From the NCBI RefSeq assembly GCF_006345805.1, contig NC_043003.1, positions 79,174,001 through 79,238,000 on the forward strand: a stretch of DNA of 64,000 nt, given 5' to 3'. Under the pieces are notes generated by a model. It made no database searches and was not told where the DNA came from. It was given only the letters and a program-made list of their open reading frames with translations. The DNA is from Octopus sinensis. Its lineage: Eukaryota. The translations under genes were made by a program, and so were the position numbers. Shown here piece by piece: positions 7,588 through 58,065 of the stretch (position 1 is the stretch's first letter; every line of letters starts with the position of its first letter).

Positions 7588-7785
7588 ATGGATAAGCAGC
7601 GGGTTTTAGCTTCGCTGCGAACGTTGATATTAATTTTTTATTTTCTGTGTATTTCACGAACGTTTCATTATGTTCAAGCCCACGGACGCTTATGGGAACC
7701 CGTTGCTCGCTCTAGTATGTGGCGGAAACACTACGGGACCCCTACAAATTACCAGGACAACGAACTTTACTGTGGCGGAGTGACC
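7588..7785 (+). CDS. AA15-type lytic polysaccharide monooxygenase (chitin-binding type-4/LPMO domain), coding exon 1
   Basis: MDKQRVLASLRTLILIFYFLCISRTFHYVQA|HGRLWEPVARSSMWRKHYGTPTNYQDNELYCGGVT: hydrophobic signal peptide ending VQA, then His at 7681-7683 and HGRLxxPxxRSSMWR...NYxDNELxCGG, typical of AA15. Donor GTGAGT at 7786, phase 0. Confidence 0.93.
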
Positions 7786-8007
7786 GTGAGTATTTATTTA
7801 TTTATAAATAACATTCAAGACAGCTGTAATTCATCCATTTCTGTGTGTGTATGTGTGTGTGCGTGCAAGTGTGTGTGTATTAAACTACAAGTGTATATCT
7901 CTCGTTGTTTGTTTGTTTGTTTATCTCTACCCTTCTCTCTCTTTATCTCCCTCGCTCACCTTCTCTCTCTTTCTGTGATGTATGCATGTATGTATATCTA
8001 CATGTAT

Positions 8008-8421
8008 ATATGTATTACTCTTTTACTCTTTTACTTGTTTCAGTCATTTGATTGCGGCCATGCTGGAGCACCGCCTTTAGTCGAGTAAATCGACCCCGGG
8101 ACTTATTCTTTGTAAGCCCAGTACTTATTCTATCGGTCTCTTTTTGCCGAACCGCTAAGTGACGGGGACGTAAACACACCAGCATCGGTTGTCAAGCAAT
8201 GCTAGGGGAGACAAACACACACACACACATACATACATATATACATATATGTACATATATACGACAGGCTTCTTTCAGTTTCCGTCTACCAAATCCACTC
8301 ACAAGGCATTGGTCGGCCCGGGGCTATAGCAGAAGACACTTGCCCAAGATGCCACGCAGTGGGACTGAACCCGGAACCATGTGGTTGGTTAGCAAGCTAC
8401 TTACCACACGGCCACTCCTGC
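8008..8421 (-). mobile_element. SINE family A, full length
   Basis: Reverse complement of the family A consensus seen elsewhere in the window. Confidence 0.9.
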
Positions 8422-8550
8422 AGTACATTTAAATACAAAAGAGAGGACAGTTAAATTTCGAACCACTACTAGGGATAAAATTTCGAATAGAATGAAAAAT
8501 AAAAACATTTACCATCTATTATTAATTATTGATAAATTGTACGTATGTAT

Positions 8551-8728
8551 AGGCGCAGGAGTGGCTGTGTGGTAAGTAGCTTGCTTACCAACCACATGGT
8601 TCATTTCCACTGCGTGACATCTTGGGCAAGTGTCTTCTACTAAAGCCTCGGGCCAACCAAAGCCTTGTGAGTGGATTTGGTAGATGGAAACTGAAAGAAG
8701 CCCGCCGTATATATATGTGTGTGTGTGT

Positions 8729-8769
<41 letters not shown>

Positions 8770-55029: not shown

Positions 55030-55248
55030 TAGTGCTTTACAAAATTTTTGCTTGAGCGGAATCCCAAGGAAGCATTCCACTGGCTCGAGGAACCCCTGTG
55101 CAATAATTTAATAGTCTTATGCACACATATCTGCACAGGAGAATTAAAAATTACTGCTGAGTTTAGCAGTTTTGTAACTTCTTGCGGAACCCCTGGACTG
55201 TACTGGCGGAACCCTAAGGTTCCACGGAACCCTGGTTGAAAACCACTG
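55030..55248. mobile_element. hAT-type transposon terminus
   Basis: ...ggttccacggaaccctggttgaaaaccactg end with repeated ggaaccc subterminal motifs. Confidence 0.5.
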
Positions 55249-57029
55249 CTCTATATCAAAGGTTCTGACATGAATAGGCAGAAAAGAATTGTTAACATAA
55301 TCAGTTTGAGTAAAGTCAGTTGAGTAAAGTGTCATCCAAGCTGATATTAATTGGTAATTAGATTTAATTTGCAACACCTGTGCATATTTATCAGCTTTAT
55401 TTTTGTTGGTAATTCTTATCAACAACTTTTCCTCTGATCATGATTTGAGAAGCCATACAGCAGTATGCTAAAGATCGGACATAATCTCTTCTGGGCAAGA
55501 AATGTAAAATAAATTTTATTATAAACGACACAAGCACTTTGTAATTTAATAGATTTCAGTGTGATACCTATTAGACAGAAATTATTTTCATTTAATAAAA
55601 TCTAACCATAAGTGAAATTATGCTAAATACAACTAAATTGAAAACCTTTTTGACCTGGTCATATGAGCAATTCTGAAAACGTTTGGGTGCAAATTTTACA
55701 CGAATAGAAGCTTTTTTTAACAAATTTTATCCTGAAAATCACCTGCGTAATATACACTGGTGTGCAAATTACATGGGTTTTTATGGTAAATGTAACAAAA
55801 GCAAAGTTTGAAAGAAATATTAACCATTTTTCATACTTTCTAGGGGTAAGCAAATAGGAAATAACAATCCCTACTCAAGAGAAAAAGTTGTTATACAATG
55901 TAATTACAGCAGCTGAGTAGCATCATAGTTAAAAGAGTGATGGGTGTTAGGAAGATAAGATGTAGAGAATGTTTGATGAGGGAAGACAGGATGAGGAAGC
56001 AGGCCCCAGTATGTACAAGCATAAACATAATGCTCTTAGTCTTCACTTTTGCTATGATGAATATGTCTTCTCAATGCTAATTATCTTGGTCTTTAGTCAT
56101 CTCCTCCATGAGGCTCAATATTTTGAGATCAGACTTTGCTACTTCATCTCATATCTTCCTGGGTCTCCCTCTTACACATATCCCATCCATAGCAAGTACT
56201 GAGTACATTGTATGGAATTTCTGGCTAAACCTTTCCTACTTATTGTGCAGAGCTAATTATCTGATGGGAATAGAATCCTGTCTGTTTTCTTGCTTACTAG
56301 AATTTTGGTCTTTTACTAAGTTAACTTTGCTAAGATACTTTGGTTCCAGGTTTTGCTTCCACTCCTGGGATCTCTTCTCTGATTATACAATTTGAACAAG
56401 GTCATCAGCATCTAATAGTTCTTCTGTTATGGCCTGTTGTATGGTTATGGCCTGTTGCATGGTCAGGCCATCGACGACTAAACCGGCAACCCCACCAAGC
56501 TTGGTGAGGAGGGTGTTTATTGGACACCCTACGGGATGAAAAACAAAACCTTTCAAAGGGTGGAGGAACTCTTGAGAGTCAACGGCCATCCAATAGATGT
56601 GTAATTATATATATTACCTCATCGTGGTAAGGGGGTGAAGCGGGAGTGTCAGAGACTTCGGTTTCTGGTAGGGCCACCCAAAGTGGATTGTTCTGACACC
56701 CAGCAGTATCAGGGCCGCACACGGCTAACGGGGCTCTGGTGAACAGAAGCGTCTGATCCAGCAACCGGCAGCTTCAACCCGTCCTGTCCCTGCATCTGTA
56801 GAAAATCTACGGCAAACAAGACGTTCTCCCAACAGGGATATATTTGCGGCTGGGGACCGCTAGCGAAACTTCCTATTCCCAAGATCCTTCAAATATTCCT
56901 CATGTATATCACACCTTCTTCAGATGCAGCATTGAGGATGAATGAAGCCAGCTCAACCCACCCCGGGTGAATGCTGTCAAGTCAAGTCTGTTATGGCCTG
57001 GGGACATTGGTGAATTGGAGGGGACTTGG

Positions 57030-57335
57030 AGAATTGGAGAAACAAGACTTGACGATCTCCTACATGTTCTCTAAATTCATTGCTTTATTCATTACTAATC
57101 CTCACCTTACTGACAGTACCCCAGTACATGGTTTGTATGGCCCTTACAAACCATTCTCTTATTCCTACCTCAGAGACCACCTGTCCATAGGGTGAAGAGG
57201 TCTGTCAAAGGCTTTCCCCACTCAATGAATGCCAATTACAATGGCTTATTCTCAGCCAAATACTTATCTTGCAGTTGTCTTAGAAGGAAGATGGCATCAC
57301 CAACCCTTCTCCCTAGCACAAAACCAAACTGCACC
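57030..57335 (-). mobile_element. Decayed RTE RT fragment
   Basis: Reverse complement resembles the QFGF...DAIFLVRQLQEKYLA.NKPL...EKAFDR region of the RTE at 34770-35100. Confidence 0.6.
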
Positions 57336-57689
57336 TGAAATATAATTCTATCCATAACTTACATCACATAGTTTGGCAATTTGATAGCTATATAATCTTT
57401 CTTCTACCTAAAGCATCTCCTTTACCTATATAATAAGTGATTTGTTTTCCTAGCACACCAACAAAATGTTTGGCAGTATTTGTTCCAGTTTTACATTCTG
57501 AGTTCGAATTCTGCTAAGGTTAACTTTGCCTTTCATCCTTTCAGGATCAATGAAATCAGTACCAGTCAAATATTAGGGTTGATGTAATCAAATTAGCCCC
57601 TCTCCTAAAATTGTTGATCTTATGCCAAAATGTCAAACTGTTGTTGATGTTATTAATTTCAATTTTTATTTTTATTTCATATTTCTTAG

Positions 57690-58065
57690 GTGCAATATAA
57701 AAAAAATGGAGGTAAATGTGGTGTATGTGGAGATCCATATGATGGACCCCGTCCCAATGAAGTAAATGGAAGATTTGCTACAGGAATCATTGTCAGAAAT
57801 TATACAGAAGGCCAACAAGTTGAAGCACAGGTTCAACTGACAGCAAATCACAAAGGCTGGTTCATGTTTACACTATGTCCCAAGAAAAAGTATTCTGACC
57901 CAGAACCTCTAGATTGTTTTGAGACTCATCCCCTGCAAATAGCTGGAAAGAATAACACGTACAAGTTTCCAATTACAGCTGATATGAAATTAGTGAAGGT
58001 AAACCTCTCGTTACCTAAAGGACTTTCATGTCCATATTGTGTGTTCCGGTGGAAATATAATGCTG
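57690..58065 (+). CDS. AA15-type LPMO, coding exon 2 (gene continues beyond the window)
   Basis: Polypyrimidine tract plus TTAG acceptor ending at 57689, phase 0. Encodes VQYKKNGGKCGVCGDPYDG...ATGIIVRNYTEGQ...LTANHKGWFMFTLCP...CF..HPL...LPKGLSCPYCVFRWKYNA(G). Second brace His at 57849-57851. Donor GTAAGT at 58066, phase 1. Confidence 0.93.

Follow-up and report, generated by a model that had tools for sequence, protein, structure and literature searches.

A 64,000-nt stretch of the Octopus sinensis genome (contig NC_043003.1, hereafter C7, positions 79,174,001 to 79,238,000 of the forward strand; below, the window) holds two short coding segments, separated by some 50 kb, that an initial annotation joined into the start of a secreted AA15-type copper LPMO. 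This reading raises the questions of whether the two segments belong to one gene, whether the remainder of that gene supplies a complete copper site, and whether the product is released from the cell or held at its surface. We consider it likely that the locus is a three-exon gene for a 260-residue AA15 LPMO that would cut chitin and is probably tethered to the cell surface.

Structure of the gene and its product

The two exons in the window had been placed exactly to the base, with canonical GT–AG borders, and a last coding exon, for Gly192–Ile260 and a TGA stop codon, lies 6.1 kb past the window end. The gene is laid out as follows:

7588–7785, + strand: coding exon 1, 198 nt, 66 codons, from the first ATG past an in-frame stop to the donor GTGAGT at 7786; holds the putative signal peptide (codons 1–31, 7588–7680), brace residue His32 (CAC, 7681–7683) and the N-terminal strand/helix with Tyr55 and Cys62
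7786–57689, + strand: intron 1, 49,904 nt, GT...AG, with repeats and a retroelement fragment inside
57690–58065, + strand: coding exon 2, 376 nt, between the acceptor ...tttcttAG and the donor GTAAGT; codons 67–191 and the first base of the split Gly192 codon; holds the CGVCGD motif, Ala118, second brace residue His120 (CAC, 57849–57851), Cys129, Cys142, Cys180, Cys183 and the W187-x-Y189 strand
58066–64000 in the window, + strand: 5,935 nt at the start of intron 2 (total length 12,075 nt)
70141–70349 in extended coordinates (C7:79244141–79244349; 6141–6349 counted from the window end): exon 3, the last coding exon; holds N193-x-W195-G, Cys205, Cys208, Cys217, Q211-E212-x-F214 and the 38-residue tail FPDPNKTSSASKFTWNKYYLWLLLTAALVTGSVYSANI

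Joined, the three exons give a 783-nt coding sequence that spans 62.8 kb and a 260-residue product identical to RefSeq entry XP_029639091.1 (‘uncharacterized protein LOC115214156’, Octopus sinensis), which bears out the earlier attribution to a cephalopod. The joined translation of exons 1 and 2 (191 residues) aligns to this entry with 100% identity and 100% query coverage; it carries the features initially read from it, namely HGRL, a TANH histidine at mature residue 89 and the paired cysteine motifs. A tblastn search of the window, intron 1 included, and of 100 kb downstream found no further AA15-like exon, and contig C7 contains exactly one each of exon-1-like, exon-2-like and exon-3-like sequence, which leaves the exons without rival splice partners. 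Exon borders are identical in all seven octopus AA15 paralogues. Database gene models, the mRNA of an orthologue in a different species and sequence logic together assign the two exons in the window to the three-exon AA15 LPMO gene LOC115214156.

Several comparisons place the product in its family. The 260-residue protein matches the full Pfam LPMO_10 profile (1–183/183, E 1.7e-18, 68.4 bits, where the cut-off is 23); the 191-residue product of exons 1 and 2 matches it with E 1.4e-14, and exon 2 alone scores 46.6 bits in a genome profile scan. In a phmmer search of the PDB, Thermobia TdAA15A (5MSZ) aligns to residues 32–189 at E 2.7e-37 with its His1 on His32, and exon 1 corresponds to residues 1–35 of mature TdAA15A. 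The AF2 model (pLDDT 92.4, pTM 0.81) has the AA15/AA10-type immunoglobulin-like beta-sandwich fold; Foldseek ranks 5MSZ first for this model (target-normalised TM 0.94, rmsd 1.2 Å, 195 columns, 40% identity) and an AA10-type chitin-binding protein second. Sequence, profile and predicted fold all identify the protein as an AA15-type LPMO, as initially proposed.

TdAA15A of Thermobia domestica is the founding member of CAZy family AA15. The octopus protein is 40–43% identical to it across the catalytic domain and shares with it the fold, both histidines, the apical Ala, the second-shell Glu, ten cysteines and a surface Tyr (Tyr24 in TdAA15A); it differs in the axial residue (Phe214 instead of Tyr184) and in a surface aromatic (Trp195 instead of Tyr166). 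Residues H32, Y55, A118, H120, W195, E212 and F214 align to H1, Y24, A89, H91, Y166, E182 and Y184 of TdAA15A, and the pairing of His32 and His120 with His1 and His91 agrees with the intact histidine brace claimed at the outset. The copper-site residues are thus present in full: His32 (mature His1), His120 (mature residue 89), Ala118, Glu212 and axial Phe214, with Tyr55 and Trp195 as substrate-face aromatics. Glu212 and Phe214 are encoded by exon 3, consistent with the initial placement of the axial aromatic and the catalytic Glu beyond the window. Among 87 homologues, the catalytic positions are kept in 73–87, with the brace residues conserved in 86 (His32) and in all 87 (His120). The mature domain has ten cysteines (62, 76, 79, 129, 142, 180, 183, 205, 208 and 217), matching the ten conserved cysteines, or five putative disulfides, reported for the AA15 catalytic domain (PMC5823890); the paired motifs are CGG, CGVCGD and CPYC, TANH holds His120 and HGRL starts at His32.

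For His32 to become the N terminus, a signal peptide has to end directly before it. The N terminus has a basic n-region, the h-region TLILIFYFLCIS, V-Q-A at positions −3 to −1 and an A31|H32 boundary, and the residue at −1 before the brace histidine is G, A, S or C in 80/87 homologues. At RTFHYVQA the c-region is on the long side, and by rule of thumb cleavage after Ser23 is a candidate alternative. From these features we infer that a 31-residue signal peptide is removed, leaving His32 as the N-terminal residue.

The C-terminal tail and probable attachment to the cell surface

Within the tail encoded by exon 3, SSAS is followed by an 8-residue spacer and then by an uncharged run of 19 residues that ends 2 residues before the C terminus. 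The lysines of the tail are luminal, and a cytosolic basic tail is absent. A rule-based check for GPI attachment, which looks for small residues at omega, omega+1 and omega+2, a polar spacer of 5–10 residues and a hydrophobic stretch up to the C terminus in a protein with an N-terminal signal peptide, finds S230/S231-A-S, a spacer of 6–8 residues and YYLWLLLTAALVTGSVYSA followed by NI. Of the seven octopus AA15 paralogues, only this one has a last exon that ends in such a tail, and a similar hydrophobic tail is found in the orthologues from Argonauta and from a Logan contig and in 13 gastropod or bivalve AA15s. GPI anchors in AA15 proteins were already catalogued in 2021 (PMC8615602). Judged from its sequence, the octopus C terminus resembles a GPI-attachment signal, and the enzyme is probably tethered to the cell surface rather than freely secreted. 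The initial description of the protein as secreted probably simplifies matters; the GPI-like or tail-anchor-like C terminus makes it more likely that the enzyme stays on the cell surface.

The tail may instead remain in place as the anchor of a type-I single-pass membrane LPMO, similar to insect group II LPMO15-2. TcLPMO15-2 likewise has a catalytic domain, a short linker and a C-terminal hydrophobic segment, which is predicted to span the membrane and would hold the enzyme there; the AF2 model of the octopus protein places a helix at 239–258, and a GPI signal and a tail anchor look alike by sequence alone. We nevertheless regard this arrangement as unlikely. The insect group II proteins recovered in our searches combine a strongly hydrophobic span with a conserved cytoplasmic tail of 53–67 residues, whereas the octopus segment ends 2–5 residues before the C terminus, lacks basic residues where the cytosolic side would be, and is preceded by the small-residue SSAS triplet at GPI-typical spacing. 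Group II also forms its own clade (100/99), apart from the mollusc AA15s. Membership in insect group II was rejected on the absence of the cytoplasmic tail and on this separate clade.

A freely secreted, soluble AA15 in which the tail is irrelevant or removed, such as a digestive enzyme of saliva or gut acting on crustacean cuticle, is distinctly unlikely. The putative N-terminal signal peptide fits such an enzyme, GPI proteins can be shed, and many AA15s are secreted gut enzymes that consist of a catalytic domain only (PMC5823890, PMC9156745). However, the 19-residue uncharged end is kept in kind in Octopus, Argonauta, a third cephalopod-like orthologue and the 13 mollusc AA15s, whereas the soluble AA15s in our alignment stop 1–5 residues past the CAD-I-x-I strand; the hydrophobic tail sets the octopus protein apart from TdAA15A, a soluble gut enzyme without a C-terminal extension that is active on cellulose and chitin. 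Further, shipworm digestive organs scarcely express endogenous AA15s (PMC8561940), which leaves a digestive role in molluscs without support.

Predicted catalysis, likely substrate and relatives

If the tethered enzyme works as its family does, cleavage of the signal peptide would allow the amino group and imidazole of His32, together with His120, to hold one copper in the histidine brace; Ala118 and Phe214 would close off the axial positions, and Glu212 would contribute to the second shell. An external reductant would convert Cu(II) to Cu(I), O2 or H2O2 would then be used, and C1 of a glycosidic bond would be hydroxylated on the surface of a crystalline polysaccharide; the resulting chain break would open the polysaccharide to GH18 chitinases. 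A very short linker would hold the mature enzyme to the outside of the plasma membrane, in an epithelium that is lined with chitin or secretes it.

Chitin is the likely substrate of the octopus AA15. The roles of the active-site residues and the Y-to-W and Y-to-F pattern of the chitin-active LPMO15-1 have been described (PMC9156745), and an axial Phe is a chitin-type signature (PMC5823890); Tyr55, Trp195 and Phe214 reproduce the pattern of the chitin-active insect enzymes TcLPMO15-1 and TdAA15B. Because TdAA15A, with Tyr at both of the differing positions, cleaves cellulose as well as chitin, a substrate call from two aromatics is a weak one.

The active-site pattern H/Y/A/H/W/F is the same as in insect group I LPMO15-1 (TcLPMO15-1 and LmLPMO15-1), which is chitin-active and needed when the cuticle is turned over during moulting (PMC9156745); for both, a chitinous matrix made by the animal itself is a plausible substrate. 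Unlike the octopus protein, group I enzymes have a C-terminal stretch of about 120 residues with two 6-Cys repeats and no anchor, and in our tree the one clade that unites all mollusc AA15s does not include the arthropod group I clade. Membership in insect group I was rejected on this tree position and on tail architecture, the 38-residue octopus tail having no cysteine. Other octopus paralogues carry the 6-Cys motif that LOC115214156 lacks.

In overall layout the protein agrees with the anchored mollusc AA15s, those that end in a hydrophobic segment (from Aplysia, Lymnaea, Gigantopelta, Nucella, Dreissena, Mya and others), and with the ‘GPI anchor’ class of AA15 in PMC8615602; its catalytic residues are identical to theirs as well. 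The cephalopod proteins differ from those of gastropods and bivalves in that linker and tail together measure 33–44 residues rather than 66–73 and lack the PWY/WHYG linker motif conserved in the latter. All mollusc AA15s form one clade (98/98). The anchored members are joined in a quick tree (SH-aLRT 88) and fall into a polytomy in a careful one, and a single clade of them is not rejected (AU p 0.48); as the trees differ and the AU test is neutral, we do not claim a single origin of the anchored tails.

The fungal X325/Bim1 proteins also combine a histidine brace with GPI anchoring of an extracellular domain (PMC10952591, PMC8615602), and catalysis by mollusc AA15s is itself argued from the family, which could suggest a non-catalytic surface protein that binds or delivers copper, perhaps for the copper demand of haemocyanin. 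We hold this to be very improbable. Unlike X325 proteins, which are not polysaccharide oxidases, the octopus protein retains the substrate face and second-shell residues of an LPMO: Tyr55, Trp195 and Q-E-x-F are invariant in every full-length anchored mollusc member (one further, N-terminally truncated member shows the later sites only), and they count against mere copper binding because they are needed for catalysis only. The close insect homologues are proven chitin oxidases (PMC5823890, PMC9156745). Sequence and fold match AA15/AA10 LPMOs only, and no relationship to X325 was detectable in comparisons that matched only AA15, AA10 and AA9 LPMO structures and Pfam LPMO_10; an X325/Bim1-like copper protein was rejected on sequence, fold and the conserved catalytic second-shell residues.

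Cephalopods have chitin composites in beak, radula, gut cuticle and sucker linings, and their prey is chitin-armoured. To our knowledge, characterisation of an AA15 from a cephalopod or any other mollusc has yet to be reported. A search under the identifiers of this gene and protein found no papers, and one for LPMOs together with octopus or cephalopod returned a single review sentence and no functional work. LOC115214156 is an unremarkable representative, itself uncharacterised, of a family that was known to occur in molluscs: mollusc AA15 genes were reported in the founding paper in 2018 (PMC5823890), and AA15 in cephalopods or ‘octopodes’ was mentioned in 2023 (PMC10952591). The novelty implied at first was thus overstated, the gene model being available in RefSeq and UniProt; with GPI-type AA15 tails also on record, the value as a discovery is small. 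The value lies instead in a well-defined candidate, complete, with intact catalytic residues and probably surface-tethered, that could address whether LPMOs of animals other than arthropods remodel endogenous chitin.

A broader proposal, offered tentatively and in our view unlikely, is an old, mollusc-wide line of GPI-anchored, non-digestive AA15 oxidases at the apical membrane of chitin-secreting epithelia. Such oxidases would nick nascent or maturing chitin fibres as the animals build or remodel their own chitin scaffolds, in the beak, radular sac, gut cuticle and sucker lining and, in other molluscs, in the shell-forming mantle. The tether is very short (about 8–9 residues), so that the copper site would be no more than a few nanometres away from the membrane, at which chitin is extruded by chitin synthase. 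A bolder version would give the tethered oxidases a copper-handling role at the cell surface.

Orthologues, introns and annotation

Relatives of the gene bear on whether it is in working order. An independent O. vulgaris annotation (CAI9725955.1) is also 260 residues long and 99.2% identical, with only 2 substitutions. The Argonauta orthologue is 63% identical, and its alignment is unbroken over both exon junctions. Logan contig SRR31864755 (1,830 nt) is polyadenylated and encodes an uninterrupted 247-residue orthologue, 57% identical and likewise continuous across both junctions; the poly(A) and the continuity together indicate a spliced mRNA in a related species. Although intron 1 is unusually long and full of transposon debris, as might be expected of a decaying or unexpressed copy whose exons are still readable, such a copy is extremely improbable given a 260-codon frame intact over three exons with consensus splice sites, the near identity to O. 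vulgaris, and catalytic residues that are all kept in Argonauta and in the expressed 57%-identical orthologue.

At 49.9 kb, intron 1 is far longer than its counterparts in the six paralogues (0.8–16 kb), and it parts the exon with the catalytic N-terminal histidine from the remainder of the gene. In the O. bimaculoides RefSeq model the true first exon appears to have been lost, apparently because of the long intron. Automated surveys that look for intact histidine braces in cephalopod assemblies that are fragmented may be led astray in this way.

A limited Pfam scan of the long intronic open reading frames found transposon domains only and no nested host gene, and Rfam and tRNA scans of the window gave no matches. 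Within intron 1 there are tandem repeats and a reverse-transcriptase open reading frame at 34896–36116; intron 2 contains a 2-kb (AT)n tract and a Tc1/mariner copy.

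Gene structure and orthologues

The initial annotation joined two exons into the start of a secreted AA15 LPMO and placed the downstream part of the gene beyond the window. The borders that it named are exact, with canonical donors and acceptor, the joined translation yields the same 191 residues, and the splice is the one chosen by the NCBI pipeline (identical XP_029639091.1). We sought the remainder in the 100 kb downstream of the window (L012) and recovered the last coding exon there, so that the gene, LOC115214156, is made up as follows (positions past 64000 continue the window numbering).

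Coding exons of LOC115214156
7588-7785, + strand: coding exon 1, 198 nt, followed by donor GTGAGT
57690-58065, + strand: coding exon 2, 376 nt, acceptor ...tttcttAG, donor GTAAGT
70141-70349 (L012:6141-6349), + strand: coding exon 3, 209 nt, acceptor ...tttaaacAG, ending in TGA

Past an in-frame stop, the first ATG is that at 7588, and the last base of exon 2 (58065) opens a split Gly codon. Together the exons form a CDS of 783 nt, interrupted by introns of 49,904 and 12,075 nt. Six-frame searches of the whole 2.72-Gb genome, queried with the Pfam model and with the peptides of exons 1 and 3, returned a single AA15 exon set on C7 (NC_043003.1) and thus no alternative splice partner there.

The 260-aa product is 100% identical to RefSeq XP_029639091.1, "uncharacterized protein LOC115214156 [Octopus sinensis]". 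Its counterpart CAI9725955.1, from an independent O. vulgaris annotation and called "Chitin-binding type-4 domain-containing protein" in UniProt, is also 260 aa long and differs at two residues, and the Argonauta hians orthologue has 266 aa and 63% identity. A Logan contig of 1,830 nt from a related species, SRR31864755, encodes a 57%-identical orthologue in an uninterrupted 247-codon ORF and terminates in a 22-nt poly(A) tail, and therefore represents a spliced mRNA of that other species; its sequence is unbroken at both octopus intron positions. The orthologous O. bimaculoides RefSeq model XP_014779646.1 (236 aa, on a scaffold of 20,397 nt) begins with 40 unrelated residues and aligns to LPMO_10 no earlier than profile position 56. 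The true exon 1, and with it the signal peptide and catalytic His1, is thus missing from this model, likely because the ~50-kb intron places that exon off the scaffold.

Family membership and active site

Profile, sequence and structure comparisons agree with the proposed assignment to AA15. Residues 32-220 of the full protein align to the entire Pfam LPMO_10 profile (68.4 bits, E 1.7e-18). Sequence comparison with the PDB returned a single match, 5MSZ (Thermobia domestica AA15A, TdAA15A; E 2.7e-37), whose crystallographic His1 falls opposite His32. An AlphaFold2 model built from 87 homologues (mean pLDDT 92.4) was matched by Foldseek to 5MSZ with a target-normalised TM of 0.94 and an rmsd of 1.2 Å, an AA10-type chitin-binding protein being a distant second.

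In the alignment to TdAA15A, His32, Tyr55, Ala118, His120, Trp195, Glu212 and Phe214 correspond to His1, Tyr24, Ala89, His91, Tyr166, Glu182 and Tyr184, respectively; the roles described in Thermobia are those of the brace histidines, an apical Ala, an axial aromatic and two surface aromatics edging the flat binding face (PMC5823890, PMC9156745). The mature octopus domain contains ten cysteines, the conserved number given for AA15 (PMC5823890). This alignment and the cysteine count indicate that the histidine brace, which the initial annotation had called intact, is so at the level of sequence together with its surroundings, including the part encoded by exon 3. The replacement of Tyr166 by Trp and of Tyr184 by Phe is the pattern of the chitin-active insect LPMO15-1 (PMC9156745), and an axial Phe has been linked to chitin-active AA10s and to the chitin-specific TdAA15B (PMC5823890).

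AA15 proteins were reported as widespread among molluscs in 2018 (PMC5823890), cephalopods and "octopodes" were listed among their holders in 2023 (PMC10952591), and the gene model is already in RefSeq and UniProt. The initial annotation therefore read the gene correctly, and the family to which this ordinary and uncharacterised member belongs was already known. Our literature search found no mention of the LOC115214156 identifiers and no functional study of a cephalopod LPMO.

The C-terminal tail and its likely role

Past the last β-strand (…CADVTI222), the protein continues for just 38 residues, FPDPNKTSSASKFTWNKYYLWLLLTAALVTGSVYSANI. First comes an N-glycosylation sequon (NKT), then the small residues S230-S231-A232-S233, a polar spacer of 8 residues and an uncharged segment of 19 residues that stops two residues short of the end; the tail lysines lie on the luminal side, a basic cytosolic tail is absent, and residues 239-258 are helical in the AlphaFold model. 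From this order of elements we infer a predicted GPI-attachment signal of classical layout, the alternative being a very short tail anchor in its place. Argonauta, the Logan orthologue and 13 AA15s from gastropods and bivalves end in a comparable way. By contrast, soluble AA15s of the same set end 1-5 residues past the last strand, and in insect group II proteins a strongly hydrophobic span precedes a conserved cytoplasmic tail that is 53-67 residues long. As a bioinformatic survey across LPMOs had listed GPI anchors in AA15 by 2021 (PMC8615602), the anchored architecture is not new.

Within the octopus genome, the six-frame searches recovered seven AA15 loci, all with common exon borders; the first intron is shortest on C9 (0.8 kb) and longest in the C7 gene (49.9 kb).

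AA15 loci of Octopus sinensis
C7, 79.18 Mb: one locus, LOC115214156
C9, 5.656 and 5.675 Mb: two loci, tandem or neighbouring, about 19 kb apart
C15, 23.2 and 54.9 Mb: two loci
C19, 47.41 and 47.46 Mb: two loci, tandem or neighbouring, about 45 kb apart, on opposite strands

Only the C7 gene carries the hydrophobic tail on the Q-E-x-F…CAD exon; in the other six that exon runs on into Ser/Thr/basic linkers and 6-Cys motifs, and further exons may extend some of these tails.

Trees were built from the catalytic domain alone. A careful IQ-TREE analysis unites all mollusc AA15s in a single clade (98/98) and recovers clades of Octopus, Argonauta and the Logan orthologue (100/97) and of the anchored gastropod and bivalve AA15s (81/93), with insect groups I and II as separate, fully supported clades. 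A quick tree places the cephalopod trio with the anchored gastropod and bivalve proteins (SH-aLRT 88), a union that an AU test did not reject (p 0.48), but the careful tree leaves the two groups in a polytomy. None of the brace, second-shell and substrate-face residues varies among the full-length proteins of the anchored set, and this speaks for an active oxidase and against a mere copper carrier like fungal X325/Bim1.

By analogy with the family, such an oxidase would enter the ER and lose its signal peptide after Ala31, a site that fits the -3/-1 rule and whose position -1 is G, A, S or C in 80 of the 87 homologues; the C-terminal signal would probably be swapped for GPI. His32, through its amino group and imidazole, and His120 would together hold a single copper ion, which a reductant would take from Cu(II) to Cu(I). 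O2 or H2O2 would then serve to hydroxylate C1 at a glycosidic bond of crystalline chitin, breaking the chain and giving access to GH18 chitinases. A tether this short suggests that the enzyme acts at the surface of the epithelium producing it, with beak, radula, gut cuticle, suckers or prey cuticle as candidate settings. The mollusc expression data that we found were limited to shipworm, whose digestive organs express AA15 at very low levels (PMC8561940).

Paralogue endings and intron content

Other octopus paralogues end in 6-Cys motifs (C15:54949489-54953500, C9:5656158-5660300 and C19:47410500-47421373), spaced C-X13/15-C-X3-C-X4-C-X4-C-X1-C. The C15 copy has two such motifs behind a Ser/Thr/Lys-rich linker of ~270 residues, the two-repeat layout of insect group I LPMO15-1 that is regarded as founding in pancrustaceans (PMC9156745). 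The quick tree grouped this copy with insect Cys12 proteins at weak support (SH-aLRT 85), and the group I architecture may be older than the arthropod–mollusc split.

In the long ORFs of both introns a Pfam scan found no domains other than those of transposons, and this limited test detected no nested host gene; scans of the window detected no RNA families or tRNA genes.

Repeats and mobile elements in the introns
25533-26034, 29224-29539 and 42521-43001: intron 1 tandem repeats, units of 157/177, 103/107 and 179 nt
31650-32006 and 59641-60167: tandem arrays, one per intron, units of 67 nt and 122/184 nt
33675-36116, + strand: retroelement fragment in intron 1, two open frames
60832-62841: imperfect (AT)n microsatellite in intron 2, 2 kb, about 1,000 copies, 71% matches
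63115-64167 (past 64000, L012:1-167), - strand: Tc1/mariner transposase frame in intron 2, HTH_Tnp_Tc3_2 and DDE_3

The second frame of the retroelement fragment (34896-36116, + strand, 406 codons) encodes the C-terminal half of RVT_1 (E 4.5e-15), with a weak PHD-finger-like match behind it, and is preceded by a 274-codon frame that has no Pfam match. The arrays at 31650-32006 and 59641-60167 belong to one satellite family (72-76% identity) in opposite orientation, and the (AT)n tract produces several long spurious open frames. The Tc1/mariner frame appears intact, with 351 open codons; the final 300 bases of the window recur at 98% identity in at least 40 other genomic places (782 first-look candidates), which suggests that the family is young, present in many copies and perhaps still mobile.
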